Assembly: GCF_963676685.1 (NCBI RefSeq)
Contig: NC_092350.1
Coordinates: 10,416,001 to 10,480,000, forward strand
Length of the DNA stretch: 64,000 nucleotides
From: Mytilus edulis
Lineage: Eukaryota
Direction of reading: 5' to 3'
This document shows positions 21,990-64,000 of the stretch, piece by piece; the stretch's first letter is position 1, and each line of letters starts with the position of its first letter. Below the pieces are notes generated by a model that saw only the letters and a list, made by a program, of their open reading frames with translations, was not told the origin of the DNA and did no database searches. Position numbers and translations under genes: made by a program.

Positions 21990-24742
21990 CAATCATTGAT
22001 TAAAAATAATGAAATTGAAAACCATTCTGTACAGCAAAATATGATTGGAAAATGGAAAATGGAAAAAAATAAATGAATTTGGAAAAGAATATTGATACAG
22101 ATAAAGTTGATTGTGTTATAAGCAAGCTGAATACTTATAATGATAAAGAAAATATCTAAAAAAATGATGTGAATAATTTAGTACATGAAGTTTCTGATAT
22201 ATTGATTGATTATGCAAAACTTACTTTTGGTACAAACGTGTATGCTAAAACTATGTTGCGTAATTCTAAGAAACAAAACAATAAACAATGGTATGATAAA
22301 GATTGTAACAACGCAACGAAAGAATTAAGAAAATCACAAAGACTTTATAAACAGTATGGGTCAAATATTTTTAAAGAAAGATTACGACAGAGTGAGATAT
22401 ATTATAAGAAAGTGATGGATGGAAATATTAAGAAATTAAATGCAGATATGAGTGACAACATGAAAAAATTGAAAAATAAAAATCCAAAGAATTTTGGAAA
22501 TTATTTAATAAGGGACGTCAAAGGGAAAAAAGAAATATATCTATTGGAACATTATTTGATTTTTTTAAAGATTTGAATAAGAACAAGTTTGAAGATGAAT
22601 TTATTATTGAAAATGATGTGAGCTCATCTTGTGACGATGACACAATTAATTGTGTAATTACACGAGAAGAAATTTTAAAAGCTGTTAAAAAGGCGAAGAA
22701 TAATAAATCACCTGGGGCAGATCAAATCATTAATGAATACATTGCTTCATCTCTAGACAGTATGATTGATATATACACACAATTGTTTAATCTTATTTTT
22801 GATACGGGTATATTGCCGGAAGCCTGACTTATTGGTAATGTGATACCAATATTTAAGAGCAAGGGGTGTAAATTAGATCCAAAAAATTATAGACCGATAA
22901 CTTTGTTGTCGTGCTTGGGGAAAATATTTACATCTATTCTTAACGACAGGTTGGGGTTTTTCGTTGATGAATTGAATATATTAAATGAAAATCAAGCCGG
23001 CTTCCGACATGGGTACTCTACAACATATTTTTTCTTTATATCACTTTTTGAACTTCTCAGTGTTAAAAAGAAAAAGCTTTTTTGCGCTTTTGTAGATTTT
23101 GAAAAGGCGTTTGATTTTGTACACCGAAATTCTTTATTATATAAACTCCTTTTGAATAATGTAAAAGGAAAGTTTCTTAGAGTTGTTAAAAATATGTATG
23201 ATGATGTTAAATCACGTATTGTACATAATAATAATTTATCTGACATGTTTGCTAGTGAAATTGGTGTTAGACAAGGGAAAATCTTTCTGCTCTGTTATTT
23301 TCTCTATATTTGAACGATTTACAGCAGTATTTAGAAAATGTTAACATAACTGGTGTACAATCTTTAACATTAGATATGGAAAATGAACTTAATATATACC
23401 TAAAACTGTTTGTATTATTATATGCTGATGATACTATTTTACTTGCTGAATCAAGTTCAGATTTACAGTTACTTTTAAATAATTTTTCACAGTATTGTAA
23501 TAATTGGAAATTAAGTATCAATGTTAGCAAAACCAAAGTGATGGTTTTTACAAGAGGAAGAATATCCAATAATTTGAAATTTTGTATTGAAAAAGAAGAA
23601 ATAGAGATAGTTAAACATTATAAATACCTTGGTGTTATTTTTTCTAGAAATGCATTTTTTTTCGAAACTAGGAAATATTTACGAGACCAAGCAACTAAGG
23701 CTATGTATAGTGTTATCAAGAAAAGCAGATTGAATCACTTATCGATTGAATGTCAACTAGAAATGTTTGATAAAGCTGTTGTACCCATTCTTCTATACGG
23801 GACTGAAATTTGGGGATACGAAAATTTTGATATACTTGAGCGAGTTCATTTGAAATTCTGTAAGCACATTTTAAAACTTAAAAACTCAATTCCAAATTTT
23901 ATGATTTATGGAGAACTTGGGAGATACCCCATTTCTTTATATGCAAAATTACGAATGATAAATTTTTGGTGTCGCCTTCTTGATAATACAAATGAAGATA
24001 AATTATTCTGTATACTATATAAATTACTATACATTAATTATAACAATTATGGTATTGGAAATAAATGGATTTTATGTATTAAGAAAACTTTTGATGAATG
24101 TGGCATGTTAAATGTATGGCATTGCCAAGATTATTTTAACAAAAAATGGATAAAATTAAGTATTGAGCAAAAGCTTAAAGACCAATTTCGACAAGAATGG
24201 TGTACAGATTTACACCAATCTTCAAAAGGTTTATGTTATAGAATTTTCAAGACTGAATTTAAATTTGAAAAGTATTTGTCGACTTTGCCTTTTAAATTTT
24301 TATATACTTTGTGTAAATTTAGATGCGGAAATTATCGTTTGCCAGTGGAGACAGGAAGGTGGCAAACTATTCCGAGATCGGAAAGGTCTTGTAATCTATG
24401 TAGCTATAAAGATATTGGCGATGAATTTCACTACATTATGTCATGCAATTTTTTTAACATAGAAAGAGAAAAATATTTACCACACTTTTGTTACAAAAAT
24501 GCAAACATTATTAAATTTAAAAATGTATTCTCATCTGAAAATGTTGTAGAACTAGAAAAATTGTGTAGATTTATACGATATATATCATTGAAAGTCTGTC
24601 CTCCTGGTTAGAGGAACTGTAATATTATTATAATGTTATTTATTTTCACACATGCGAAACAAAGATATGTATTATATATGAACTGTTATTATCTCTGTAG
24701 CTATGTACTAGTTTATGAGAATAAAATAATTCATTCATTCAT
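21990..24742 (+). mobile_element. 5'-truncated decayed LINE (RTEX/CR1-group-like RT)
   Basis: KSPGADQI, NYRPITLL, ENQAGFR, FVDFEKAFD, LLYADD and a C-terminal C-x2-C..H..C motif. Frameshifts and a stop; AATAAA plus (ATTC)n tail. 5' end approximate. Confidence 0.85.
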
Positions 24743-47214: not shown

Positions 47215-47792
<578 letters not shown>

Positions 47793-49044: not shown

Positions 49045-49428
<384 letters not shown>

Positions 49429-49475
49429 TTAATACGTTGTTTGACTTGAACAAGTATAAACAATGATTATCCCAA

Positions 49476-50101
49476 TATATATGTGGTGGTGTTTAACGAC
49501 CTTGACTGGCCTTTCAGCCCTCGCACGGTCGGCTCGGTGCCCGAAGGCGTTTGGTGAGCTTTAAATATTCTGGAGCCATGGGTCAGGAACAAGTAGTGGA
49601 GGTCGCAATATGGAGGCCGCCATCTTGGTTTTGGTGAGTTGTTTTTGGTTTTTGACTATTTTGTTGTTTATTCTTCACTAACGGCTGCTTTCAGGGCCAG
49701 TTTGGTCAGCTTGGCAGCCCGCTAGCCTCGATGATGGAGTACTGGTAGATGATCTCGGACGTAGTTCGAAAGATGACAGGAAGCATTATCAGGACCAAAG
49801 CCGTGAGGCAGTGAAATGAAGGTCGTATCACCCAACAGCCTAGGATACAGCCCTCGGACGTTAATCGGCATAACACTCCCCATAATACAATGGTTTTGGA
49901 GTGCATGTTAACGCGGGTACGCCAACTACTACGTCTATCTGTACGGCATGGATCGGTTTCTGTCATCTTAAGTAGTAAGTCGTTGATATCTAACTGTAAA
50001 CCCTCATCGAAGATAGCGGGTAAAGGAGAGCTGGCCCAGCACGTCCGTTCAGCTGTAATGACTGAGACGTGACTGGATTGTGTTTTGAATGGTAATGGAT
50101 G
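49476..50101 (-). mobile_element. Non-autonomous ~620-bp retroelement, copy U1 (subfamily A)
   Basis: Flanked by GATTATCCCAA (49465-49475, 50102-50112); 3' stem-loop plus TTAAAC tail. Confidence 0.85.
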
Positions 50102-50112
50102 GATTATCCCAA

Positions 50113-50165
50113 TATGTGGTGGTGTTTAACGACCTTGACTGGCCTTTCAGCCCTCGCACGGTCGG
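50113..50165 (-). mobile_element. ~55-bp mini-element S1 (3' stem-loop only)
   Basis: Matches the U1 3' end; flanked by ATTATCCCAA. Confidence 0.8.
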
Positions 50166-50176
50166 TATTATCCCAA

Positions 50177-50780
50177 TATGTGGTGGTGTTTAACGACCTT
50201 GACTGGCTATACAGCCCTCGCACGGTCGGCTCGGTGCCCGAAGACGATTGGTGAGCGTTTGAATAATTTCTGCCGTGGGTCAGGAACAAGAAGTAAGGAC
50301 GCCGAATGGAGGCCGCCATCTTGGTTTTGGTGAGTTGATTTTGGTTTGTTTACTATTTTGGATTTTACTTCTTAACAACGGCTGCTTTCAGGGCCAGTTT
50401 GGTCAGCTTGGCAGCCCGCTAGCCTCGATGATGGAGTACAGGTAGATGATCTCGGACGTAGTTCGAAAGATGACAGGAAGCATTATCAAGACCAAAGCCG
50501 TGAGGCAATGAAATGAAGGTCATATCACCCAACAGCCTAGGATACAGCCCTCGGACGTTAATCGGCATAACACTCCCCATAATACAATGGTTTTGGAGTG
50601 CATGTTAACGCGGGTACGCCAACTACTACGTCTATCTGTACGGCATGGATTGGTTTCTGTCATCTTAAGTAGTAAGTCGTTGATATCTAACTGTAAACCC
50701 TCATCGAAGATATCGGGTAAAGGAGAGCTGGCCCAGCACGTCCGTTCAGCTGTAATGACTGAGACGTGACTGAAAAAATT
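50177..50780 (-). mobile_element. Non-autonomous retroelement copy U2 (subfamily B-like)
   Basis: Flanked by GTATTATCCCAA (50165-50176, 50781-50792). Confidence 0.85.
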
Positions 50781-50792
50781 GTATTATCCCAA

Positions 50793-50848
50793 CAACAAAT
50801 GGAAGTTTTTAACGACCTTGACTGGCTATACAGCCCTTGCACGGTCGG
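50793..50848 (-). mobile_element. ~55-bp mini-element S2
   Basis: Tail matches U4; same 5' breakpoint as S1. Confidence 0.8.
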
Positions 50849-52812
50849 TATTATCCCAACTACTACTAAATAGAGTTTAATGGCGGCTACCCTTGCGGGT
50901 ATTGCGCCAGATTACCTTATATAAAAACATTTCAAGTAAATGTTTTAGAATTATCATTATTTAGGTATAAGCCTATATTATATATTCATATTATAGAAAT
51001 TTGTGAGTTTTTTTGTTTTTTTTCCCCTTAAATTTAATCTTATTTAAATCTGAACTATAGTGTTTATTTTAATTATCTTGATTATCTTTTGGTTAATTTA
51101 AAGTACGAAAAAGAAATATATGTGAACTTATTATTCCATCATTTGTAACTTAGCTTTCTTTGTTTATGAATATTAAATACATTGGTAAATAGGTGTGTTT
51201 GTTGTTTATACATGAAAAATGTAAGTATCTTATACTCTTTGATAGACATATCTGACTTTTACAAATATGCAAATCCTAGAAGGGGTCCGACATATTCCCG
51301 TACATGGTATATACATTAATACAATTATACCGCGGCTCGTACGTCCTTGGTAAACTGTGATTCTCTGTATATTGAATTTGACTAAAGATAGCACCCTCAC
51401 TTATAAAAGATTCTTGAACTTACGTTGTAGAATAAAAAAAATATATAATATATATATTACTGTGTATGTATAATTAGAATCTGTAATGTATTGTTATAAC
51501 ATATTTGTGTGTAATAAATTGCAAGTGTTGATATTGTGCAGTTATGTTCAGTATAGATACAAGAGAGTGCTATCTTGGTAGTACCTGATCTAGTGTACTA
51601 CTTCAAAAAATAAAAACTTTCGTAGAAGTTTTAGTGTATATTGTCAAATTCAACGGGGTTATGTTTCTTTTATTTAGAAATCATAAACTGATAAATGATA
51701 CCCTCCAGCTCTGTTACAACTTTTAAAAAGGCCAATATTTAGAAATGAAAAAACTAAAAAGAAAAGGTAAATAATATATTTCTACCAAATTATTTGTTTT
51801 TGGTGTCATCCGTTTAGACTGGAGTTGTTTCCCTTGCACTGTAAAGAAATAAATTGTAAATACCTGCAGCCGTTAAGCTACCACGTGGTAACCATGTGCT
51901 ACAGGCAGACAGGGCGAGAGGGCTGTAAACAAACAATTTCCAGTCTAAACGGATGAATTAGCAGCCGTGACTAAAAATGATAGACAATAATACCAATACA
52001 AGGTTAGTATTTACACGGTGCATTGTTTTTGGTCGTTGTAAAATATGCTGGTTGGTTCTAAAATCATCATATCACAAGGACCTGGGTTCTGGCAAGCCAG
52101 TGCCCTTAAAGAAAAATATCCCACAATAAGATAACTCATCTCGTCCGTCGACCCCATGTATAACCCTATCAATATTTTAGCTGCGGTGTCAATAGTTTAT
52201 CCATTGACAGCAGCTGAATCACATTCCTCATAGTGTTAGTTAGGTACTTATATATATACAATGTACATGCAGTTAATTCTTGTTGTGAGGTTTGTGTCCC
52301 CAATTTGATTTGGGATGGACCGACGAGAGAGTGCTTGTGATTGATGATTTCTGGGAGATATGTCAGACTCCTGTGGCTTGATATTTTACATATGATCTCA
52401 TGTATTTATCAGCAAGATGAGATTTATAATATTAAAAATCAACTGCTAATTATTTTAATCTAATTTATTTTCACTTTCTAACTTAGATTTTCTCTTATCT
52501 AGAGTTAATTTAATCGGTTGTTACAAATGTAATTAGTATTTTGAATATTTGAGATGCCTTGTCATACTTGTTAAAATCCATGGGTTGTTGTCCAGTGACT
52601 AATATTTCAAAGTTTTATTTTAGAAATAAGTAATTTTACTAGGCCTATAGTTTATGTCATTTTTCTTTTCCTATACTAATAATATCTGTAGGTTTTCTAA
52701 CCCCTACCAAAAATATCTTATTAAAATAATTATAAGCATGTTTTTACAAAATTTACACTAGAAACTAGAAATATATATTGAGGTTTTTTGTATTTTCTGA
52801 ATAATTTTACTT

Positions 52813-54561
52813 TTATCGCATACCCGTGTTTATTAAATAATCCCATATTGGGATAAGGGTCTGAGAATATCCTGAAAATAAATTTTTATACGAGAGATCT
52901 TTTACACCGGTTGATTCAAACTTTTCCATCATTTTATGTCTTTGTGGTATGTACTTATTACAGTTAAACAGGTAGTGTTGCATGTCGTCCACTACTAAAC
53001 ATGTGTCACACAGTTCACTATTACATTTACCCATTGTGTATTTGAATTTATTAGTGAATATATAACTTGATCTAAGTTTAAATAGAGTTCTTTCTCTTTC
53101 TCTTGTACTCTTTGGTATGGTAATACAAAAGTTAACATCTTTTTGAATAGCGTGTAGTTGTTTACTTTTAGTGTTGTTTTCCCAGTATTGTTGCCACATT
53201 TTTTTTAATAAATTTTTACATAAACATTTGATATCTTCTTTGTAAAGTGGTATACTAGTTATACATGTCTCTATTGATAGAGCCTTTTTAGCTGCTGTGT
53301 CTGCCATTTCATTACCACTTAAACCCACATGACTGGGTATCCATTCTAAAATTATATTCAAACCTAATTTGGACAGTTTACTGTATATATATTGGATGTC
53401 ATAAATTATTTGTGTTTTAACTTTAAATATACTTCCTGTAATAGCTTTTAGTGCTGACAGTGAATCTACAAATATTACAGTATTTTCTGGTTGAAATTCT
53501 TCTAACCAATATAAAGATAAAAGTATGGCTGTCAATTCACACATAAATATTGAAACATGATTTTGTAATTTAAAACCTTTTTTTACTTTAAGTTCTGGAA
53601 CGACAAAAGCACATGCATTTGTGTTGTTTTCTGGATTCTTAGATCCATCTGTATATATTTTTAAAAAATTACTATACTTGTTATCAATGAGGATATTTCC
53701 TTCACTTTTAATTAGGTGAGGACTATCCTTTTTAGTAATAATATTTGTAAGTTCCGTTTTGACCTGTGGTTTTAGAACATGCCATGGTGGGGTAGGGAAC
53801 TCTTTACATTTGTATACAGTATTAATATCTACATTATATTTATTCATAGTATCATGTGCAGTAACACAATATGGTTTTTGATTTTCTTTAATTTTTTCCT
53901 TATTAAATTCATATATAGCATTTTCTTGTAAACTTTTTATAGTTGGGTTTGTGTCATTTAGACTAAATATATTCAAAAAAGACTTAGTAATAAGACTTTT
54001 TCTTCTCAACCCATATGGGGGGTCACCAATTTCAGTCTGTAATCCACTTATACTGGCAGTTTTATGAGCACCTGCACATATCCTTAATGCTTGGGCTTGA
54101 ATACTATCTAGTTTTTTCTTGACAGAGTAGGAGGCTGAGTTATAAACCTCACAGCCATAATCTATCTTTGACCTTATCATTGATATATATATTGTTCTCA
54201 GGGTAGAACAATTTGCACCCCATTTAGTACCAGTTAATAATTTCATGCAGTTCAACACCCTTGAACATCTACTTTCTATATATTGTACATGTTTTAACCA
54301 TGTTAGTTTTGAATCGAAAATCATACCTAGAAACTTGACTTCTTTAACAAATGACAATATTGTTTCTCCAAGTTTAAGTTTAATACAAGGAGAACTACTC
54401 TTACTAAATATCATAGCTACCGTTTTTGTTTGTGATATTAGGAAACCCCATTTATCACACCAAGTATTAATTGTGTCTATATCCTCTTGCATTCTTTTTT
54501 GTAGATATTTAGAACTTTTTCCAGATAACCATATGGCACTGTCATCAGCAAATTGTGACAT
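52813..54561 (-). CDS. LINE ORF2 C-terminal part: RT (FADD), RNase H, CCHC
   Basis: FADD, YTDGS, CELTAI, VDSLSAL, WIPSHVGLSGNEMAD, CDTC..H..C. Confidence 0.92.
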   Translation of the reverse strand: MSQFADDSAIWLSGKSSKYLQKRMQEDIDTINTWCDKWGFLISQTKTVAMIFSKSSSPCIKLKLGETILSFVKEVKFLGMIFDSKLTWLKHVQYIESRCSRVLNCMKLLTGTKWGANCSTLRTIYISMIRSKIDYGCEVYNSASYSVKKKLDSIQAQALRICAGAHKTASISGLQTEIGDPPYGLRRKSLITKSFLNIFSLNDTNPTIKSLQENAIYEFNKEKIKENQKPYCVTAHDTMNKYNVDINTVYKCKEFPTPPWHVLKPQVKTELTNIITKKDSPHLIKSEGNILIDNKYSNFLKIYTDGSKNPENNTNACAFVVPELKVKKGFKLQNHVSIFMCELTAILLSLYWLEEFQPENTVIFVDSLSALKAITGSIFKVKTQIIYDIQYIYSKLSKLGLNIILEWIPSHVGLSGNEMADTAAKKALSIETCITSIPLYKEDIKCLCKNLLKKMWQQYWENNTKSKQLHAIQKDVNFCITIPKSTRERERTLFKLRSSYIFTNKFKYTMGKCNSELCDTCLVVDDMQHYLFNCNKYIPQRHKMMEKFESTGVKDLSYKNLFSGYSQTLIPIWDYLINTGMR

Positions 54562-54572
54562 AGCACAGTACT

Positions 54573-56630
54573 TTAAATTATTGGATATATATAATCATTC
54601 ACCATGATGTTAAATAGTGTAGGACTTATACAACTACCCTGTGGTGTACCATTCTGAATTATAAATATTTCAGAGTAAGTATTATTAACTTTAACTTGTA
54701 TAGTTCTGTCACTAAGAAAATCCTTTACCCATCCCAACATATTACCCCTTATACCTATTGAAGCCATTTTTATTAATAACCCATTTTTCCATAGCATATC
54801 AAATGCCTTTTGGAAATCTATAAATACACCAACTGTGAAATGTTTTTTGAGAAATGCTTTATGAATATCATTATCAATTCTAATTATTTGTTCCATAGTA
54901 TTTCTATTTTTCCTAAATCCACTTTGATTTGGTGTGTAGAAATTATTTTTTTCTAGATACCAACGTAGTCTATTATTAACCATTTTCTCCATAATTTTTA
55001 CAAAATTAGAAGTAAGGGCTATTGGTCTATATGACTGTGGGTCTGTGGGGTTTTTTCCAGGTTTAAGTACTGGTGATATAATGGAATGTTTCCATTCACT
55101 TGGAAGTTTTTGTAAAAACCAAACTCTATTGATAAAAAGTAATAACACAGACAGTGATTTGTCTGTAAATTGTTTGAACATAGAATACGTAATTTTATCT
55201 TTTCCAGGGGAGGTATCAGATGTATCACTGATAGCATCTTTTAATTCTTGCATAGTATATGGTTCATTATAACTATCAGAGTTATCCTTATAATAGTGTA
55301 ATAATTTACTGTACTCCTTTTGATCAATATCTTGTTTCTGATTTTTAAATTTTTCTGAGTAATTATGGTCACTACTGACTTGAGCATAATTTGTAGCAAG
55401 TATATCTGCTTTGTCTTGAGTAAATTCATATTTGGTATTATTATATAACAGGGTTGGTAAATTTAATTTTTTAAATGTTTTACCCAACATTGATTTTACT
55501 TTTTTCCATACATCTGATAATTTAGTATCATTATTGAGAGAGTTACAGTAGCTCTCCCAATACATAGCTTGTGCAGCTTTGATAGTTTTTCTGCACGTTC
55601 TTTCTTTTTCTCTATATATAGTGAAATCAATACCAAGACCTGAATGTTGGGCACGGTTTTTACAGGTGTTCCTTTCTTTAACACATTTAGTGCATTCAGG
55701 TGTCCACCATGGTACCTGTGGTTTTTTAGGTTTATTATTTTTTAATTTGACTGGGATGCACTCCCCAGCTATTTTGAGTATTTTGTTTGTTAGTCTTGAA
55801 CATGTTTCTTCTATATTGTCAGAAATCATGTCAGGACTCAAATGTTCATTACACTTGCTGGAGAATGCCTCCCAGTCTGCTTTCTTATAATTATATACAG
55901 ATTCAGTTTCATCAATTTGCATTTGTTTATGGCTAAAACTAATATTTACAACATGATGGTCACTGCCATAGGAACTAATGAGGTCAACTGACCATGTTAA
56001 TTTACTAGCTAAACTAGAATTACAAAAAGACAAATCAATAGGTGACAGTTCTAATGTACTGGGGTTACATCTTGTACCTGTACCATCATTAAGAAGTACT
56101 ATATCTTTATACTCAAGGAAAGAGAACAGCTCTCTTCCCTTAGTATCTATATTTTTACCGCCCCACATAGTGTGGTGGGCATTAAAGTCTCCACATAGTA
56201 TAAATTTTCCCTCTATTTGATCAAATATATTGTTATAATGGGGTAGTTTTGTATTTGATGCTGTGTCATAAAGATTGACCAGTGTAATATTATTATTATC
56301 AAAACTAAATTCAATACATGATATTTCTAAATCACTGTTAATATTCTTTTTCAGATATGGAAGATTTTCTCTGACATATATAGCTGTACCTCCATGTGAT
56401 TTGGTATTACGTACAGAAAAATCAGCTATTTTATAACCTATTACATGTGGATGATCTTGTTCGTTTTTACACCATGTTTCCTGGAAGCAAATAATATCAG
56501 GCTTCATTTGTGACATAGCTATATACGCCGCAGCATTGTTGTTAATGCCGCGACAGTTCCAATGAACAACACTGAACATTATGTTATATAATAATAAACA
56601 TGATAAATAAATAGTATAATTGATAGCCAT
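54573..56630 (-). CDS. LINE ORF2 N-terminal part: APE endonuclease and RT, frameshifted at ~54590
   Basis: WNCRG, FQETW, GDFNAH, SDH, YRPIALT, QSGFR, DFQKAFD, GTPQG. Confidence 0.92.
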   Translation of the reverse strand: MAINYTIYLSCLLLYNIMFSVVHWNCRGINNNAAAYIAMSQMKPDIICFQETWCKNEQDHPHVIGYKIADFSVRNTKSHGGTAIYVRENLPYLKKNINSDLEISCIEFSFDNNNITLVNLYDTASNTKLPHYNNIFDQIEGKFILCGDFNAHHTMWGGKNIDTKGRELFSFLEYKDIVLLNDGTGTRCNPSTLELSPIDLSFCNSSLASKLTWSVDLISSYGSDHHVVNISFSHKQMQIDETESVYNYKKADWEAFSSKCNEHLSPDMISDNIEETCSRLTNKILKIAGECIPVKLKNNKPKKPQVPWWTPECTKCVKERNTCKNRAQHSGLGIDFTIYREKERTCRKTIKAAQAMYWESYCNSLNNDTKLSDVWKKVKSMLGKTFKKLNLPTLLYNNTKYEFTQDKADILATNYAQVSSDHNYSEKFKNQKQDIDQKEYSKLLHYYKDNSDSYNEPYTMQELKDAISDTSDTSPGKDKITYSMFKQFTDKSLSVLLLFINRVWFLQKLPSEWKHSIISPVLKPGKNPTDPQSYRPIALTSNFVKIMEKMVNNRLRWYLEKNNFYTPNQSGFRKNRNTMEQIIRIDNDIHKAFLKKHFTVGVFIDFQKAFDMLWKNGLLIKMASIGIRGNMLGWVKDFLSDRTIQVKVNNTYSEIFIIQNGTPQGSCISPTLFNIMVNDYIYPII

Positions 56631-56675
56631 TTTTAATTGTATATTGTTAATACTTTATATTGGGCGATAAATGAA

Positions 56676-57914
56676 TTATATCATTTCAGTTGTAACTCTA
56701 CTAGCCATTTCCAAACCTAATGAGAGATCAAAATTTGACCCAAACATCTGTTTTACAACTATTCCTACAAAACCCATAATTGACTTTAAAGTAAAGTCTA
56801 TGGGTTTAGTAGGAGGGCTCATAGTCTGGTGCATGACAACACTAATTACAGTTACCAAGTCTTGTATGGTACATTTATCTTTTTTGGGTGGTACTGAGCT
56901 CTGATCTTTTGGGGTTTTGCTAGTTGATTTAGAGCTTTCTTTATGATGTTCATTGATTTTAAGCTGGTTTGTTGCTTGTTGTAGTGAAATATTTTTAGAT
57001 TTCACCAGCTTAAGGGCCATTTTTTGTTGGGTCCTTTGTGGACATTCTTTGTCATTAGACATATGTTTACCTTTACAGTTTACACATTTTAAATCTGTTG
57101 AGGTACATTGCTCGTTCTCATGTTCCTCTCCACATTTAATACATCTTTTTTTATTTCTACATTGGTTTGCCATATGCCCAAACCCCTGACATTTATAGCA
57201 TTGAATAGGTTTAGGTACAAATAATTTGGTATTATATGTTTTGTACCCAATATTGATTGTTGCTGGTAGCTGGGGTGTCTGAAAGAATAACTTTATGGAT
57301 CTAGATGGTTTTCTTTCACCGATTTGTTTGTCAAAGTAGGACATCCTTTGAATTTTACTAACTTTCTGGGCTTTAAGCACCGACACGATATCTTCGTCTT
57401 CAACGTTAATGTCTAGAGGCACGTTATAAATAACTCCTATTGATGAAGTTACAGATTTGGGCACACTTGTCCTAATCTGTAATTCACCAATGAGTTTGAC
57501 GCGTTTTAGCTGTTTCCACTGCGATTTGTCAATGCACTCTACTAGTATTTTCCCACTGTTAAGTGGTTTAATTCTTTTTGGGGTACCAACAGTCTCAAGG
57601 AGAATCTTTTGGATTTTTATCTGATTTTGGGTGCTAAGTTTAGTATTGGGATCAACACTCTGTAGGACTAGTAAATACTCATTACCTTTTACTGAGGGTG
57701 TATGGGGGAGAGGGGAAGGTGTATTAAGGAGGGTATTATCATTTAGGGGAGATGTACTTGCCATTCTTTTTCGTCTTTTCCTCTGTGTGGACCAGCCATG
57801 TTTTTCATATTCAGAGGATTCCATGTCTGTGGTATCAGTTTCATTGAGGGACTTATAAAATTCTTCCTCATCGAACTGACCAGAAATTGTTTTGTCCATA
57901 ATGTCGGACAACAA
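56676..57914 (-). CDS. LINE ORF1 gag-like protein with three zinc knuckles (first ATG at 57899)
   Basis: CYKCQGFGHMANQC, CIKCGEEHENEQC, CVNCKGKHMSNDKEC. Confidence 0.92.
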   Translation of the reverse strand: MLSDIMDKTISGQFDEEEFYKSLNETDTTDMESSEYEKHGWSTQRKRRKRMASTSPLNDNTLLNTPSPLPHTPSVKGNEYLLVLQSVDPNTKLSTQNQIKIQKILLETVGTPKRIKPLNSGKILVECIDKSQWKQLKRVKLIGELQIRTSVPKSVTSSIGVIYNVPLDINVEDEDIVSVLKAQKVSKIQRMSYFDKQIGERKPSRSIKLFFQTPQLPATINIGYKTYNTKLFVPKPIQCYKCQGFGHMANQCRNKKRCIKCGEEHENEQCTSTDLKCVNCKGKHMSNDKECPQRTQQKMALKLVKSKNISLQQATNQLKINEHHKESSKSTSKTPKDQSSVPPKKDKCTIQDLVTVISVVMHQTMSPPTKPIDFTLKSIMGFVGIVVKQMFGSNFDLSLGLEMASRVTTEMI

Positions 57915-58156
57915 AGAATATTGGTGAACACTTTTCAGTAGACAAGAAAAGTTGAGTATCTAACTATAATAATACTATAATAATACTGAATAAATTATTC
58001 AGATAGCAGACAATATCAATTATTTAATATTCTCAAAAAAATATCTGAAATATAAGACTATAAACACAAAATATAATGATATATTCTAATTCAGTGCAGT
58101 GCTACAAAAACACGACCGTGATGATCCGGGACTCACAACCCGAGGTATTATCCCAA

Positions 58157-59684
58157 ATATATGTGGTGGTGTTTAACGACCTTGACTGGCCTTTCAGCCC
58201 TCGCACGGTCGGCTCGGTGCCCGAAGGCGTTTGGTGAGCTTTAAATATTCTGGAGCCATGGGTCAGGAACAAGTAGTGGAGGTCGCAATATGGAGGCCGC
58301 CATCTTGGTTTTGGTGAGTTGTTTTTGGTTTTTGACTATTTTGTTGTTTATTCTTCACTAACGGCTGCTTTCAGGGCCAGTTTGGTCAGCTTGGCAGCCC
58401 GCTAGCCTCGATGATGGAGTACTGGTAGATGATCTCGGACGTAGTTCGAAAGATGACAGGAAGCATTATCAGGACCAAAGCCGTGAGGCAGTGAAATGAA
58501 GGTCGTATCACCCAACAGCCTAGGATACAGCCCTCGGACGTTAATCGGCATAACACTCCCCATAATACAATGGTTTTGGAGTGCATGTTAACGCGGGTAC
58601 GCCAACCGCTACGTCTATATGTACGGCATGGATCGGTTTCTGTCATCTTAAGTAGGTGTAAGACATAATAATGTCCTTATAAAATAATGTCCATTGCCAT
58701 GGAATGATGTCCCTCAAAAGGACAGATTTTTACTGCTAACTATATGAAATAGTGTCCACTCACAGGACAAATTTTCATAGTAGTTGCTGTTAAATTGTAA
58801 GGGAAGTAATACAAAGGTCATTACAAAGTTTTATTATACTTGAATTTTAATTAAAATATGAAGGATTGATGAGAAATTGATCAATGTACAAATGTAAACA
58901 AATAAATAATGGATGGAAGTGAATATAGAGAAATTTAAGTTCCTAGAAATTCCCAGCAAATGGAAATGACAATGAAAGAATAACAATAAGAAGGAAGTGT
59001 AAAATCAAATATGAAGAACTTTATAATATGTATTATGTCAGATAACTTGCGGAAGGCAATAGAAAATAAATAATGTCCATTGCCATAAAATATTGTCTCC
59101 ATGAAATATGGTCCATCTGCAGAACAAATTTTCGTAGTGAATGTTATTCAATTGTGTACTCAAAGGAAAATAAAATGGAACAGCATCTAACATGTATATA
59201 ATTATATTAAAAAATATAGATATGAAGATAAGGATGGTAGGAGTGCCAATGAGACAATTTTTATGTCAAAGTAACAATTAATTCAAGTTCGTAATTAAAG
59301 TTAAAATGCGTCCAGTAATAAAAAGGCAATGGATATCATTTAATACTTTAATCATATAAAAAAATGACCTGGCGGACACAATGTCCTGTGAAATAAAGGT
59401 CCATGTGGACATATTATGGTAGCGAAAAATGTCTATGTTCATGGACACTTTTTCATACCTGAGGACATGTTTTCATAGGAAATTGTGTCCAGGACACATT
59501 TAAATAAGTAAATATTGTCAAAATGTGTCCGGTGGACATTTTTTCATGGAGGACATTATTAAATCCTACATAGTAAGTCGTTGATATCTAACTGTAAACC
59601 CTCATCGAGGATAGCGGGTAAAGGAGAGCTGGCCCAGCACGTCCGTTCAGCTGTAATGACTGAGACGTGACTGATGAAATGAAT
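58157..59684 (-). mobile_element. Non-autonomous retroelement copy U3 (subfamily A), interrupted by a MITE
   Basis: Near-identical to U1; flanked by TATTATCCCAA (58146-58156, 59685-59695). Confidence 0.85.
58657..59570. mobile_element. 914-bp non-autonomous DNA transposon with TGT..ACA termini
   Basis: 21-bp imperfect TIR tgtaagacataataatgtcct / aggacattattaaatcctaca; many subterminal tgtcc/ggaca motifs; tagg/tagt flanks. Confidence 0.8.
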
Positions 59685-59695
59685 TATTATCCCAA

Positions 59696-60322
59696 CAACA
59701 AATGGAAGTGTTTAACGACCTTGACTGGCTATACAGCCCTCGCACGGTCGGCTCGGTGCCCGAAGGCGATTGATGAGCATTTAAATATTTTCTGCCGTGG
59801 GTCAGGAACAGGTAGTAAGGACGCCGAATGGAGGCCGCCATCTTGGTTTTGGTGAGTTGATTTTGGTTTTTTACTATTTTGATGTTATTCTTCACAACGG
59901 CTGCTTTCAGGGCCAATTTGGTCAGCTTGGCAGCCCGCTAACCTCGATGATGGAGTACTGGTAGATGAATCGTGGACGTAGTTTTAAAGATGACAGGAAG
60001 CGTTATCAGGACCAAAGCCGTGAGGCAGTAAAATGAAGGTCGTATCACCCAACAGCCTAGGATACAGCCCTCGGACGTTAATCGGCATAACACTCCCCAT
60101 GATACAATGGTTTTGGAGTGCATGTTAACGCGGGAACGCCAACACCTACGTCTATCTGTACGGCATGGATTGGTTTCTGTCATCTTAAGAAGTAAGTCGT
60201 TGATCATCTAACAATAAACCCTCATCGAAGATAGCGGGTAAAGGAGAGCTGGCCCAGCACGTCCGTTCAGCTGTAATGACTGAGACGTGACTGAATGGAT
60301 TGAATCCAAAATGGATTGAATG
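59696..60322 (-). mobile_element. Non-autonomous retroelement copy U4 (subfamily B), promoter-proximal
   Basis: Flanked by TATTATCCCAA (59685-59695, 60323-60333). Confidence 0.85.
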
Positions 60323-60555
60323 TATTATCCCAAGAGGTGGTAGTTTACTATTTATACCCGCAAAACGGATTGAAAGATGTTTCAGTTCTAAACCAATCAA
60401 ATCATCGCTTCTTCCAGGTAGTTAGGTTGAATGTTAGAAGGTGCTCTCTCCGAAGTTCGCGTTAAGTAAAAACTTTCAATCCGTTTTGCCGAGTATAAAT
60501 AGAAATTTTTATTAACGGCCATCATTCACTGATTACATTTCAGAGAGTATACATC
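60323..60555. promoter_or_regulatory. Bidirectional H2A/H2B-type histone promoter
   Basis: Divergent TATAAATA boxes (60356-60349 minus; 60494-60501 plus), each preceded by CTTTCAATCCGTTTTGC. CCAAT at 60393. ATCATTC cap motif at 60521-60527, about 30 nt from the plus-strand TATA. Confidence 0.8.
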
Positions 60556-60930
60556 TGTCTGTATTTAACTAATCACCACAAATAGTTAAACATGTCAGGA
60601 ATCTAATCACCACATTTAGTTAAACATGTCAGGCATGGATTAGATAATAAAATGTCGAATCAGAAAATGTATTGACTAATGTGAAAATCTGTATATATGT
60701 TTGTTCCGTCTGTGTATATGTTCTTCATGTGTGTATTTATAAACTGTTTTGTGTGATCAACGAAATTTGACGTTCACAAAGAAAAAGGCGGGGAAGAGAA
60801 ACAAAGCATTTACTGACTTAAGTATAAGCAACCCACTTGCACAAGCACTACTTTTTTCCTTTCCCCACCTCACCTTTCTATTATCCATATGTGTTTAACT
60901 TTTTGTTCATTATAACAATATAAAACAAAT

Positions 60931-62226
60931 ATGAATGTGATATATTCAAGAGCCGCCTCAGATGGCGAAGAAGGGATAAAAATAGGGAAAATGATCCCAA
61001 GGCCCTGTACCCTGCTAATACAATCTGATTACGAATCACATAAAATCACATCGGCAGAAATGCTACATTACATTAATAGCGAGATAAATCTTGAAATATC
61101 AGCCCTCATATGCTATTTTCAATCAACTGGTATAAACAAGTTCTCGGCCTCTTTTAGAGATGAACATGCAAAAGACATCTTCCAAGATACATTTAGCGAT
61201 AAAATAGAGATTCAAGATATTACATTTAATGTAGAACAAGCAGAACCCCTACAATGGGGGAAAAAAAAAAAAACTATTGACATTACTTTGTTTGGTATAC
61301 CATATGAATTAAAACCAGAGTACATAAGAAACAAAATGCAAAAATATGTAGATATAAGGGAAATAAAATATAACAACTACAAAGATTTCCCCGATATATC
61401 CAGTGGGGTCGTTACTGTTGTAGCAAACAGTATTAAAGAGGATATACCCAAAAAGATATATATAAAAGGGCAACAGATATCTACTCGATATGAAGGCCAG
61501 CCACACGGCAAAAAGTGTTTTAATTGCCAAGCATATGGACATATCTCAAAAGATTGTCCAGAGCCACAAGGTAGAATCTGGGGTTCAGCAAGAACCCACC
61601 CTACTAGAACAAGAACAAATAGTAGTGAGTCCCTATCCACACAAGACTCACAAGAATCCCAAGATTCACAAGAAACCACAATTGTAAACTCAGGGGAAAT
61701 AGAGGTAGAAATCTACCATGAAAAGGAAACATTAGAAATAACCCAAACTAACACTTCCGATTCCACCCCCTTAGAAGAAACTCTAAACGAATCAAAGAGC
61801 AGCAATGAGTCAATTGATCATGAAATCATAATCACACAAGCTCTTGAAGTCAAATTTGATAAACCTCAGTCAGAGACTGAAAAAATAAATGAAAAACAAA
61901 AAGGTAAAAAAAAGCCAAACCAAACTGATTACAATGATCTGATGGACGATTTAACAGAGATATTGGGCTCAGTTTCTGAGTCAGAGCCCGAAAATAATGA
62001 AACAGAAGAACAGCAAATAGAAAATAAAGAGTCGAATGCCAAATCTGGAGCCTCAGTGGCTCAAGGAAAAGGTACGACCCAAACCAAAAAAGAAAAAGTC
62101 CTAACAGACAAAGAAAAAAAGAGAGCAAGAACAGAAAGACAAAGAATCGAAAAAAGGAAAAATCTAAGTGATAGCGAAAATGAAGTAGAAAAAAGGAAGC
62201 CAGTGGCAAAGAAACAGATAAAATAA
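60931..62226 (+). CDS. L1/Tx1-type LINE ORF1 with a single CCHC knuckle
   Basis: TLFGIPYEL..IPKKIYIKG..RYEGQP..CFNCQAYGHISKDC and a charged C-terminus. Confidence 0.85.
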   Translation: MNVIYSRAASDGEEGIKIGKMIPRPCTLLIQSDYESHKITSAEMLHYINSEINLEISALICYFQSTGINKFSASFRDEHAKDIFQDTFSDKIEIQDITFNVEQAEPLQWGKKKKTIDITLFGIPYELKPEYIRNKMQKYVDIREIKYNNYKDFPDISSGVVTVVANSIKEDIPKKIYIKGQQISTRYEGQPHGKKCFNCQAYGHISKDCPEPQGRIWGSARTHPTRTRTNSSESLSTQDSQESQDSQETTIVNSGEIEVEIYHEKETLEITQTNTSDSTPLEETLNESKSSNESIDHEIIITQALEVKFDKPQSETEKINEKQKGKKKPNQTDYNDLMDDLTEILGSVSESEPENNETEEQQIENKESNAKSGASVAQGKGTTQTKKEKVLTDKEKKRARTERQRIEKRKNLSDSENEVEKRKPVAKKQIK

Positions 62227-62359
62227 AACAATGGTCATAAGATAAAACTAGATTTAAATTAAAATTAAAGAAAGACAAAACCTATTATATTGTATATTTT
62301 ATTATTTATTTATGATTAGTATCTTCACATTACTTCTATACTTTCTTTTACTAACTCAC

Positions 62360-64000
62360 ATGAGCACACTTCATATTATTTCACAAAATATAAGGAAAAA
62401 TATAAATACAAAGTATAAAGATGTTATCAACAGTTACCAAGATGCAAATATCATATGTCTACAAGAAACAGGGGTTTTAAAAAGATCAACCCAAGTTGAC
62501 ATTGAAGCCACTACAAATTTTAAAATTTACAGTTCCGATGGAGAAAATAGGGCAAGGGGTGTATGTATATTAATAGCAAAAGATGCAAAAGAAATACTTC
62601 AAAAACAGGTTCCAGCGACGCTAAAAGGAAATTTCATCCATATTGAATTTAAATTAGAAAGTAAAAAATATCAACTGCTAAATATATATAGCCCAGAGAA
62701 TACAACAAGACCACAAACAGAATTTTACGATCAATTAAATAAATATGTTGAACTGATAAATGTGAAAACAGACGTAGTAATTTTTGGAGGGGACTTTAAC
62801 CTGATAGCATCAGAAATAGATTCAAAAACAGGAATAATTAAAACAGGTAGAAGGACTTTAGATTTATTTAACAGTATAATTCACAAACTAAATATAAAGG
62901 ATACTTACAGATATAGAAATAAAAATAAAAGAGTATACTCATGGGCAAATTTCGATAACAGTTCAGCAACAAGAATAGACAGAATTTATCTATCTAAACA
63001 TATCTGCAATAAAATAAAAGACACCATAAATACACCATTTACAAGATCAGACCATAAAGGATATAAATTAAGAATTTTAATGGGCCATATAAAATGGGGA
63101 ACAGGATTCTGGAAGCTAAACGAATCATTATTAAAACAAAAGAAGTATACAGAACTGGTAAGAAATTTTTGGAATTCATGGGAAAAGGAGAAATATAAAA
63201 TGAATATCTTAGATTGGTGGGAAAAAGGGAAAAAATCAATAAAGGATATAACCATAAACTATAGCAAGGTAATGGCAACCAAAGAAAAATACAAATATAA
63301 GGGCTTGATACAAGAGCTAGAAGAAGAGGAAAATAAGGATACAAATGATATATCTAATGACAGAATAAATAAAATAAAAAAAGAAATAGAAACATTAGAC
63401 GATAATAGGAAAAAAGGAGTTATAATAAGATCAAGGGAGGAATATTATAATGGAGATCTAGAAAATATAGAAATTTTTGAATTAGCTGAAGAAAAAAGGG
63501 GCATAAAAAAAGAAATAAGAGAACTTTATGACAAAAATGGGATATTAAGGGAAAACAAAGAAGAAATAATAAACGTGGTTAGAGACTTTTATGAAGGACT
63601 ATATAGTAGCCAAAACATAGAAAACGGAAAAATTAAAGACTATTTGGAAGGGGTCAAAATTAATAAATTAGAGGAAGCAGATTGGATACATTTGAACCCA
63701 ATCATGACAAACGAAGAATGTTTTAAAAATACAAAAGACTTCCAAAATAATAAAACACCAGGAATAGATGGTCTAGGGAAATCATTCTATGTCGAATTTT
63801 GGGATATTATAGGCGAGGATTTGACAGAAGTAATAAATAATATTTACTTAACAGGGGAAATGACGGAATCTATGAAAACCGGCATAATTACTCTGAGTTA
63901 TAAAAATAAAGGAGATCCTAAAGAATTGAAGCAATGGAGACCCATAAGTTTATTGTGTTTTGACTATAAAATTATAACAAAGACCCTAACAAAGAAAATG
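62360..64000 (+). CDS. L1/Tx1-type LINE ORF2 (APE endonuclease and start of RT), open to the window edge and absent from the ORF track
   Basis: Hand translation of motifs: MSTLHIISQNIR, CLQET, GGDFN, RIDRIY, SDH, GFWKLN, KTPGIDG, FWD, WRPISLLCFDYKII; start and end are in the same frame. Confidence 0.9.
   Translation, partial: MSTLHIISQNIRKNINTKYKDVINSYQDANIICLQETGVLKRSTQVDIEATTNFKIYSSDGENRARGVCILIAKDAKEILQKQVPATLKGNFIHIEFKLESKKYQLLNIYSPENTTRPQTEFYDQLNKYVELINVKTDVVIFGGDFNLIASEIDSKTGIIKTGRRTLDLFNSIIHKLNIKDTYRYRNKNKRVYSWANFDNSSATRIDRIYLSKHICNKIKDTINTPFTRSDHKGYKLRILMGHIKWGTGFWKLNESLLKQKKYTELVRNFWNSWEKEKYKMNILDWWEKGKKSIKDITINYSKVMATKEKYKYKGLIQELEEEENKDTNDISNDRINKIKKEIETLDDNRKKGVIIRSREEYYNGDLENIEIFELAEEKRGIKKEIRELYDKNGILRENKEEIINVVRDFYEGLYSSQNIENGKIKDYLEGVKINKLEEADWIHLNPIMTNEECFKNTKDFQNNKTPGIDGLGKSFYVEFWDIIGEDLTEVINNIYLTGEMTESMKTGIITLSYKNKGDPKELKQWRPISLLCFDYKIITKTLTKKM

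Follow-up and report, generated by a model that had tools for sequence, protein, structure and literature searches.

Seven retrotransposon copies, all inserted at one 10-bp site in the promoter of a histone H2A gene, were identified in the window (the whole 64,000-nucleotide stretch of Mytilus edulis contig NC_092350.1 that was analysed), and the stack that they form was confirmed to be real. It probably arose through repeated target-primed reverse transcription at a single preserved target, placed approximately 23 bp downstream of a TATA-like box. The stack separates the H2A TATA box from the 5'UTR of the gene. It consists of four non-autonomous units of about 0.6 kb (U1-U4), one LINE of 7.3 kb and two hairpin-only mini copies (S1, S2), with seven of seven elements in H2A sense. 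On the plus strand of the window, the 10-mer ATTATCCCAA occurs eight times (copies ending at 49475, 50112, 50176, 50792, 50859, 58156, 59695 and 60333), as compared with an average of 0.35 and never more than two in shuffled sequences. Both the positions of these copies and the seven same-sense elements among them (U1, S1, U2, S2, LINE, U3, U4) had been called correctly in the initial annotation. Its description of neighbouring copies as matching over 10-13 bp held for 10-11 nt, with 13 not being reached; the 10-mer is followed by an A at six of the eight junctions, giving 11 nt in common, and by a C at two.

Read in H2A sense (minus strand), the promoter half runs from the TATA box (TATAAATA) through 15 nt, a target site duplication (TSD), U4, a TSD, U3 and a TSD to the LINE, with the gene half continuing as TSD, S2, TSD, U2, TSD, S1, TSD, U1, TSD, 5'UTR and ATG. 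All TSD copies and elements of the stack lie on the minus strand, the TSD copies being located as matches to the 10-mer, which reads TTGGGATAAT in H2A sense. The promoter-proximal TSD copy (60324..60333) adjoins U4 (59696..60323), identified by sequence comparison as a full-length member of the non-autonomous TTG-tail subfamily; its 5' filler, of the CAATCCAT type, is 30 nt long, and its identity to dispersed copies is 99.8%. Beyond the second TSD copy (59686..59695) lies U3 (58157..59685), a full-length unit of the TA-tail subfamily that is 99.8% identical to dispersed copies and is interrupted by a 916-bp MITE-like DNA transposon with inverted ends and a TA duplication (58655-59570). The third TSD copy (58147..58156) precedes the LINE (50860..58146; 7,287 bp), which ends in a (TAG)n tail and was delimited with Pfam and by comparison with other copies. 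Between the fourth (50850..50859) and fifth (50783..50792) TSD copies is S2 (50793..50849), a mini copy of 57 nt consisting only of the 3' hairpin, UUAAA and a TTG-type tail. U2 (50177..50782) is a full-length unit of an older or rarer subfamily, its best genomic relative being 98% identical, and is followed by the sixth TSD copy (50167..50176) and S1 (50113..50166), a 54-nt mini copy (hairpin and tail) whose 5' end point coincides with that of S2 and which matches the final 53 nt of U1 and U3 at 100% identity. The seventh TSD copy (50103..50112) and the eighth (49466..49475), the latter adjoining the H2A 5'UTR, flank U1 (49476..50102), a full-length unit of the TA-tail subfamily with 99.7-100% identity to many dispersed copies. 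Each member possesses an individual 5' end (filler or truncation point) and an individual tail (TA-rich, TTG-type or TAG-type). These differences identify the members as separate reverse-transcription products rather than DNA duplicates and, together with the different subfamilies, support the earlier view of independent insertions as opposed to tandem duplication.

The interrupted gene possesses an intact H2A coding sequence (49045-49422, minus strand; Pfam H2A) and a 5'UTR (49423-49465, minus strand) that matches the next histone repeat, L061. Together (49045..49465) they are separated by 10.9 kb from the TATA box (60349..60356, minus strand), which is identical in the intact repeat L061 and whose first T precedes the start of the promoter-proximal TSD copy by 23 nt. 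An H3 gene was also identified with Pfam (47215-47625). In L061 the empty site was found to comprise the TATA box, 15 nt, a single 10-mer, the 5'UTR and the ATG, and the window aligns with it over 227 nt on the promoter side and 485 nt on the gene side with no mismatch (712/712), bearing out the prediction that removal of the insert rebuilds a normal promoter. Exact-pattern counts across the whole assembly returned 100 empty H2A promoters and one filled, namely the stack. This H2A copy occupies the outermost position of the histone array on the chromosome, with most histone units being situated in unplaced contigs. In a run from another individual, one contig joins the H2A 5'UTR and TSD directly to a TTG-tail element; this junction is absent from the assembly, and the site has therefore either been hit independently or is polymorphic. 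Short-read contigs at the H2A site showed only the empty-site form and this one alternative junction, contigs breaking at repeats.

The LINE encodes an ORF1 with zinc knuckles (56676-57914) and an ORF2 in two separate frames, the first containing APE and RT (54573-56630) and the second the end of RT and RNase H (52813-54561); all are on the minus strand and were identified with Pfam (for ORF2, Exo_endo_phos 4.8e-18, RVT_1 3.9e-27 and RNase_H 4.5e-12). Its 3'UTR is approximately 1.9 kb, and its 5' end is without the first ~4 nt present in other full-length copies. With an APE endonuclease, RT and a C-terminal RNase H, it may be assigned by predicted domain content to the I superfamily (I, Nimb, Ingi); its Atlas matches were to generic jockey-like LINE clusters only. 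A second ORF1-bearing element at 60931-62226 was rejected as a relative of the LINE, the zinc knuckle being the only match.

The U family comprises about 1,000 dispersed genomic copies, and 60 or more ends of the LINE are likewise dispersed. The 5' ends of both read as Inr-like, with a DPE-like GGWCGTG at +29..+35, and their 3' ends have a common architecture, in which a two-tier hairpin is followed by UUAAAC, some 10 nt of further sequence and a tail of short repeats. This hairpin/UUAAAC/tail module is all that the minimal S copies contain. Insertions of the U family display TSDs of 8-13 bp (mode 11), 5' fillers of 0-54 nt, tails of TA, TTG or TAG, and truncated S copies. By their TSDs, truncation, 5' extras and tails, the U, S and LINE copies are products of target-primed reverse transcription, with U being probably of the LINE-mobilised type. 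The hairpin sequences of U and the stack LINE differ, and thus the latter may be a mere relative of the true driver. No Rfam family matched within 49400-51000 at E values up to 1, on which ground a snRNA-, tRNA- or 5S-derived SINE origin of U was rejected; without a tRNA, 5S or 7SL head, U is not a classical SINE. Loci L143-L145, which share only U positions 25-210, were also rejected as the autonomous partner, the sequence beyond being non-coding.

The initial annotation had proposed a histone-TSS-specific LINE with non-autonomous partners and expected most copies to abut the 10-mer or other histone TSSs. Tabulation of flanks contradicted this. About 80 dispersed U copies (29 + 10 + ~40) were found in unrelated flanks, each with its own TSD, as were the LINE ends examined (~28 3' ends and 14 5' ends), and the TSDs of dispersed copies, 8-13 bp in length, have no sequence consensus. 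Only one H2A site is filled against 100 empty. The elements do not home to histone genes, and no histone genes were found beside loci sharing a 26-nt promoter motif. What the families appear to share at their insertion sites is a TATA-like box approximately 23 bp upstream of the TSD and no histone sequence.

Site choice by the U family is non-random and keeps a fixed distance to a TATA-like box whatever the surroundings. TATAWA was found to start at -26..-21 from the TSD in 21 of 62 TSD-defined dispersed insertions, these being full-length, mostly young U copies and not all copies, as compared with 0-3 per other 6-nt bin (binomial p 2e-22); it peaks at -23 (nine sites) and -22 (eight sites). 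The A+T fraction at -23..-18 is 0.84-0.90 against a background of ~0.65, and the anchored motif reads TATA-W-A-W-(G/T). A held-out set, fetched after the idea had been formed, gave TATAWA in the same bin at 8/28 sites (p 1e-10). Forward TATAA[AG] outnumbers its reverse complement in the bin by 17 to 8, and genome-wide pattern counts gave 40 occurrences of TATAWAW at 22-52 nt upstream of the U core versus four at a gap of 62-92. The canonical TATAWA is present at only about one third of sites and any run of seven A/T at about half, with some sites having no recognisable box. For the LINE, 13 sites were definable, of which about eight have a W-rich box at -23..-20 (canonical in two only); it may follow the same TATA-distance rule as U.

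Independent insertions at the same place in paralogous flanks were found for four pairs of loci (L011/L106, L012/L113, L003/L121 and L086/L091). Other stacks with chained TSDs were identified behind TATA boxes at L066 (three elements, four TSD copies), L128 and L024, and 21 junctions genome-wide consist of a hairpin end followed by the start of an S copy. The targets include, besides the histone promoter, several canonical-looking putative core promoters. The UUAAAC box of the element itself (17-22 nt from the end) was considered as a means of making the 3' junction a secondary target; this was unsupported in the one checkable case (L033/L077), where the spacing is 30 nt and the TSD is shifted.

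Under repeated target-primed reverse transcription, and counting from the first T of the TATA-like box, a first nick would be made about 23 bp downstream (range 21-26), the box being upstream on the element sense strand, and a second nick 8-13 bp beyond it. An insertion disturbs neither the TATA box nor the 15-nt spacer, and one TSD copy is also left as it was; with box and spacing intact, the promoter-proximal copy stays a perfect target that can be hit again, each further hit adding one element and one TSD copy. The box of the H2A promoter is the canonical TATAAATA, exactly at -23. The 10-mer followed by A at six of the eight junctions fits an 11-nt TSD inherited through reuse of the promoter-proximal copy. 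If true, the TATA-distance rule accounts for seven elements at one nucleotide position without histone specificity. The outermost H2A copy of the array is presumably dispensable, in which case insertions would be tolerated and accumulate. Signs of youth are the identities of U1, U3 and U4 to their relatives (99.7-99.8%) and the perfect flanks. In the order of insertion that we infer, the members closest to H2A would be the oldest; U2 (98%) looks older than U1, which runs against U1 as the first arrival. Seven hits at one copy versus 100 empty identical sites also call for an extra assumption, either array-edge tolerance or a burst.

It is tentatively proposed that the LINE and its non-autonomous dependants home to Pol II core promoters via the TBP-bound TATA box or the pre-initiation/open complex. 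The template strand would then be nicked about 23 bp downstream of the box, the TSD would correspond approximately to the region melted at initiation, and a new copy at the start site would gain a TATA box for its own Inr/DPE-like 5' end. With the landmark preserved, a target that renews itself and stacks with chained TSDs would both be explained. TBP or the Pol II pre-initiation complex is favoured as the tether. In a rather unlikely alternative, neither TBP nor the transcription machinery takes part: the box would be recognised by an element-encoded protein itself, or by way of the A/T-tract shape, and any suitable A/T box would be a target, promoter or not. At many sites the only box is a degenerate A/T one, for instance TTAAATAG or ATAAAAC, the genome is A/T-rich with such boxes being common, and no coding sequence was found within 1.5 kb downstream at any of the 11 TATA-like-box loci examined, all of which would suit direct reading. 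However, the best-defined sites resemble true core promoters: TATATAAG or TATAAAGG lies in G+C-richer surroundings, in one case downstream of a CCATATGG box, and the histone promoter is itself a target. Furthermore, no DNA-binding domain was detected besides the ORF1 zinc knuckles, and cutting two helical turns away from the box, at a constant spacing, is what tethered complexes typically do. ORF1, the APE-RT linker and the C-terminus were searched for a domain able to read TATA or to bind TBP, and none was found, which counts against tethering as well.

An improbable alternative to successive hits is that the whole chain was laid down at once, in one compound event or short burst, by a complex held at the promoter for several rounds, for example by re-priming from the fresh TSD end (…ATTATCCCAA-3', the same as the original primer 3' end) with new RNA templates. 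This would be consistent with all datable members being very young, with the 0/712 differences in the flanks to the neighbouring repeat and with hairpin-only S copies, resembling aborted rounds, next to complete copies in this stack and in others; a uniform per-site rate would also hardly yield seven hits at one copy while 100 identical sites stay empty. However, successive 11-nt TSDs account more simply for the extra A at six junctions, the nearest relative of U2 differs by ~2% as against 0.2-0.3% for the other members, and U3 has had time to receive a DNA transposon. One complex would, in addition, have to use templates of three tail types, LINE included.

That the stack is an assembly artefact of mis-joined repeats is very improbable. 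Short-read contigs end in repeats with none spanning the junctions, and most histone units are in unplaced contigs, but a mis-join would not give eight perfect TSD copies, seven complete tailed elements and a flawless empty site, and similar chained stacks exist at several other loci.

Recognition of the H2A start-site sequence TTGGGATAAT by the LINE and its partners, in the manner of R1, R2 or Tx1, would readily account for a histone promoter with seven insertions that share one TSD, and for the further junction in the run from another individual, but has next to no probability given the unrelated flanks and separate TSDs of every dispersed U and LINE copy examined, the TSDs without consensus and the 100 empty H2A sites. 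For R1, R2, Tx1/Keno/Mutsu/Utopia and NeSL, insertions recur at a single position in a multicopy gene; the target is regenerated and head-to-tail arrays form (PMC4640811, PMC5340908). Nearly all copies of such sequence-specific LINEs lie in one target, whereas the families of the stack have unrelated flanks and occupy 1/101 H2A sites; neither a common target nor appreciable occupancy, the marks of the target-sequence-specific non-LTR class (R1/R2/Tx1 type), was found. Amplification at the DNA level from one or two insertions, by unequal crossing-over or replication slippage, is scarcely credible even in a tandem array, where unequal exchange is common, and with U1 and U3 99.4% alike, since the 5' filler or truncation point and the tail length or type differ in every member and, with three subfamilies and a LINE present, no pair of members can be DNA copies.

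Integration whose position is set by a transcription landmark is known at Pol III genes. The yeast LTR retrotransposon Ty3 integrates a few bp from the Pol III start, as set by the TBP-containing TFIIIB complex (PMC5911963, PMC6673722), and here too position relative to a landmark counts while flanking sequence does not. Ty3, however, is an LTR element with an integrase that enters Pol III genes in either orientation, whereas the stack elements employ APE-type target-primed reverse transcription at Pol II-type TATA boxes with a biased orientation. TRE5-A, a LINE targeting tRNA genes in Dictyostelium, inserts ~48 bp upstream of a Pol III landmark, and contacts between its ORF1 protein and TFIIIB subunits, TBP among them, have been reported (PMC5911963, PMC6101501, PMC5391098). 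It is similar in being a non-LTR element at a fixed distance from a transcription-complex landmark, but it belongs to another LINE clade and inserts upstream at Pol III genes, unlike the stack elements, which insert downstream of the TATA box at the position of a Pol II start site.

Full-text searching of the literature found neither a TATA-distance-specific nor a histone-specific LINE, and in the literature searched landmark guidance as in Ty3 and the Dictyostelium TRE elements is not known to extend to Pol II TATA promoters or animal APE-type LINEs. If true, the homing proposed above would be the first of a non-LTR retrotransposon to Pol II start sites and a natural system in which a retrotransposon nicks at a fixed distance from the TATA box. 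It would explain how promoter-less non-autonomous elements secure transcription, and predicts that TATA-driven genes of this animal are knocked out or rewired recurrently and in an orientation-specific way. It would also offer a tractable case of LINE tethering to a chosen DNA landmark, with a bearing on tools for targeted RNA-mediated insertion.

APE, RT and RNase H, zinc knuckles in ORF1 and tails of short repeats are features that the stack LINE shares with the Drosophila I factor and with LINEs of the jockey/Doc type, and the Inr/DPE-like 5' end of U and the stack LINE is a further resemblance. A modest preference for core promoters and A/T is seen in de novo insertions of the I element (PMC10018349), and the I superfamily in bivalves is represented by Nimb and Ingi (PMC10294476). 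No fixed TATA-box spacing has been reported for the I element, and the stack LINE is likened to it by its domains. In stringent LINE/SINE pairs (e.g. eel UnaL2/UnaSINE1), the partner is recognised through a 3' stem-loop. The stack LINE and U similarly have the same 3' hairpin architecture, but their hairpin sequences are unlike and U is no classical SINE. Several independent retroelement insertions in one promoter have also been described for Drosophila CG18446, into which roo has inserted multiple times (PMC4982627); the roo copies are alternative alleles in different strains, spread over ~370 bp, whereas the H2A stack is a chain at one nucleotide position on one chromosome.

On the forward strand of the window, ATTATCCCAA was found to occur eight times, against 0.35 copies expected from shuffled sequences, and the position of every copy reported in the initial annotation proved exact. 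As the genes for H2A (49045-49422) and H3 (47215-47625) both lie on the minus strand, the order of the elements between these copies is given in minus sense. The H2A TATA box TATAAATA (60349-60356, minus strand) is followed by a 15-nt spacer, TTGGGATAAT, U4, the 10-mer, U3, the 10-mer and a 7.3-kb LINE, beyond which come the 10-mer, S2, the 10-mer, U2, the 10-mer, S1, the 10-mer, U1, the 10-mer, the H2A 5'UTR and the ATG. U1-U4 are non-autonomous units of about 0.6 kb, S1 and S2 are hairpin-only mini copies, and the 10-mer is the recurring target site duplication (TSD). Each copy had been described as matching its neighbour over 10-13 bp; the repeated match was confirmed, with 10-11 nt rather than 13 common to neighbouring copies. 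The 10-mer is followed by A at six junctions and by C at the two closest to H2A. The filled H2A copy is the outermost unit of the histone array placed on this chromosome.

For dispersed U copies, the upstream flanks were aligned on the first TSD base, from which distances are counted (negative being upstream). TATAWA was found to start at -26 to -21 in 21 of 62 U sites, with 0-3 sites in each of the other 6-nt bins from -68 to -3 (p about 2e-22), the most frequent starts being -23 (nine sites) and -22 (eight sites). The hypothesis was formed on the first 34 sites, 13 of which had TATAWA in this bin, and the 28 sites fetched later by exact match to the U 5' core gave eight (p 1e-10). A+T content was 0.84-0.90 at -23 to -18 of these flanks, compared to about 0.65 elsewhere. 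The anchored motif was TATA-W-A-W-(G/T), mostly in forward orientation (TATAA[AG] 17, reverse complement eight, with palindromic TATATA accounting for part). When no TSD calls were used, TATAWAW preceded the U core by 22-52 nt at 40 genomic places, and by 62-92 nt at four. Furthermore, in four pairs of insertions (L011/L106, L012/L113, L003/L121 and L086/L091) the elements occupy corresponding positions in paralogous sequences and have different TSDs. The TATA box of the window, TATAAATA, has its first T at -23, the modal distance of the dispersed sites. This statistically strong TATA-distance rule replaces histone specificity and explains the stack. Among 13 definable LINE sites a W-rich box was seen at -23 to -20 in about eight, canonical in two only, and adherence of the LINE to the same spacing is suggestive only.

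A 26-nt motif of the H2A intergenic promoter, GGTGYTCTC..CGARGTYCGCGTT (60439-60464), was observed to recur at 85-92% identity in the upstream flanks of four loci with element copies (L128, L033, L051 and L078). In L128 it lies upstream of a TATAAATAG hit by U, and it also occurs inside tandem repeats of 130 bp into which the LINE has inserted. Histone genes were not found near the loci sharing it.

Regarding how the box is read, tethering of the elements to TBP or the pre-initiation complex is favoured, since the motif agrees with the consensus for TBP, the best sites resemble real core promoters, and the two nicks fall approximately two and three helical turns past the box, on either side of the region that melts at initiation in Pol II promoters. 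Direct reading of the A/T box by an element protein is a serious rival. No DNA-binding or TBP-binding domain was found in the element proteins.

In target-primed reverse transcription, the first nick falls where the future TSD has its upstream edge. An insertion leaves the TATA box, the 15-nt spacer and the TSD copy on the upstream side intact, so that machinery measuring from the box would meet the same target again, each new hit adding one element and one TSD copy. The extra A would have come in with S1 and been part of an 11-nt TSD whenever a later hit occurred on the promoter-proximal side, 11 nt being the modal TSD length of the U family; the distribution of A and C after the 10-mer is that expected under such serial hits. 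Chained stacks are common elsewhere and fit this model of repeated hits. At L066 a TATATAAT box precedes two U units and a truncated copy, which are flanked and separated by four copies of one TSD. Two U units share one TSD at L128, where TATAAATA lies at -23, and at L024 one TSD occurs three times, enclosing a U unit and a truncated copy. Genome-wide, 21 junctions were identified in which a hairpin end is followed by an S-type start within 12-42 nt. Less probably, the whole stack in the window arose at once, in one compound event or burst.

U1-U4 carry four different 5' fillers ahead of a common core and represent three subfamilies, the 5' ends of S1 and S2 are the base of the 3' hairpin, the LINE begins a few nucleotides inside the usual LINE 5' end, and every member has its own tail (TA-rich, TTG-type or TAG-type). 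These differences indicate separate reverse-transcription products, upholding the earlier description of independent insertions rather than tandem duplication. The anticipated empty site was present in the next histone repeat of the same chromosome (L061), where a single 10-mer lies between an identical TATA box and an identical 5'UTR, with both window flanks free of substitutions (227/227 and 485/485 positions). U1, U3 and U4 share 99.7-99.8% identity with dispersed relatives, and U2 98% with its nearest. Judged by the near-identity of U1, U3 and U4 to their relatives and by the unsubstituted flanks, the stack is young, unless gene conversion holds the flanks uniform. Contigs from public runs, too short for spanning junctions, contained the empty-site form. 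In a contig of run X2, from another sample, the H2A 5'UTR and 10-mer were joined directly to a TTG-tail element (49472 to 50793); as this joint is absent from the present assembly, it may reflect an H2A site that was hit independently or, alternatively, a polymorphic stack of which this is a shorter allele.

The histone-TSS-specific system of LINE and non-autonomous partners proposed in the initial annotation was rejected, as all dispersed copies read had unrelated flanks, which it had itself named as contrary to its reading, each with its own 8-13-bp TSD, and exact-pattern searches returned 100 H2A sites that are empty and no filled one besides that of the stack. First-look candidates numbered about 900-1,060 for the U unit, on all large contigs, and 63 for the LINE 3' end. 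Histone genes are repeated in tandem units of 5,738 bp, and the next units start approximately 8 kb past the window end. In the placed array beyond the window (C7:10499541-10502231), one H2A-site spacing is 2,659 bp compared to 5,738 bp, so the unit there is partial; most histone units are carried by unplaced contigs.

U-family targeting resembles that of two elements guided by TBP-containing TFIIIB, namely Ty3, which integrates at Pol III start sites, and TRE5-A of Dictyostelium, which does so near tRNA genes (PMC5911963, PMC6101501, PMC6673722). It is unlike that of the R1/R2/Tx1 families, which are sequence-specific (PMC4640811). In Drosophila, the preference of the I element for promoters and A/T is only modest (PMC10018349). 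The RNase H-bearing I superfamily of bivalves is represented by Nimb and Ingi (PMC10294476). Neither a LINE with fixed TATA-box spacing nor a histone-specific LINE was found in the literature searched in full text.

The LINE encodes a zinc-knuckle ORF1 and an ORF2 with APE, RT and RNase H, in two frames in this copy. The U unit, a label unconnected with snRNA, matched no Rfam family. LINE and U 3' ends are alike, consisting of a two-tier hairpin, UUAAAC, about ten nucleotides and a short-repeat tail, and S copies are exactly this module (hairpin, UUAAAC, tail). Such a 3'-end pattern is shown by LINEs that recognize their own 3' stem-loop. The hairpin sequences of U and the stack LINE differ, so the true driver may be another LINE to which that of the stack is only related. 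An element of approximately 85 nt starting AATGCCCAAAAAGG was observed with the same 5' end inside stacks at L088 (reverse complement, 150-232) and L112 (875-960); its hairpin and TTG tail are shared with S2 and U4, and it could be a further mini family, or else the true driver LINE's 3' end.

By direct reading, both U and LINE begin with an initiator-like CA(G/T)TC and have GGWCGTG at +29 to +35 (CGG(A/T)CGTG at +28 to +35) with identical spacing, their 5' regions being otherwise unrelated (LINE 58105-58146, U1 core 50042-50075, minus strand). This pair resembles the internal Inr/DPE promoters of insect jockey/I-type LINEs, and with a TATA box upstream of the landing site, a core promoter of this type would be complete. 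Between TSD and core, U copies carry 0-54 nt of variable, initiator-like filler in CAAT/CCAT/TCAT-like units (60294-60323 and 50076-50102 in the window; loci L008, L013, L014 and L119), possibly produced by slippage or template jumps, or left over from earlier start sites.

A later insertion of 916 bp interrupts U3 at 58655-59570. It has imperfect inverted ends, internal repeats of the GGACATTAT type and a duplicated TA, and is probably a MITE belonging to a DNA transposon that targets TA. On the plus strand, the gene paired divergently with H2A has lost its 5'UTR at 60559/60560 relative to the intact repeat, the break lying 66 bp past its own TATAAATAG, just ahead of the ATG and not at the +23 position. 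Beyond it, another element (60560-64000, plus strand) carries a 431-aa zinc-knuckle ORF1 (60931-62226); this was considered as kin of the stack LINE ORF1 and found to be unrelated, with the zinc knuckle alone in common. Further reverse-transcriptase ORF fragments at 22169-24611 (plus strand) belong to another degraded LINE unconnected with the stack.
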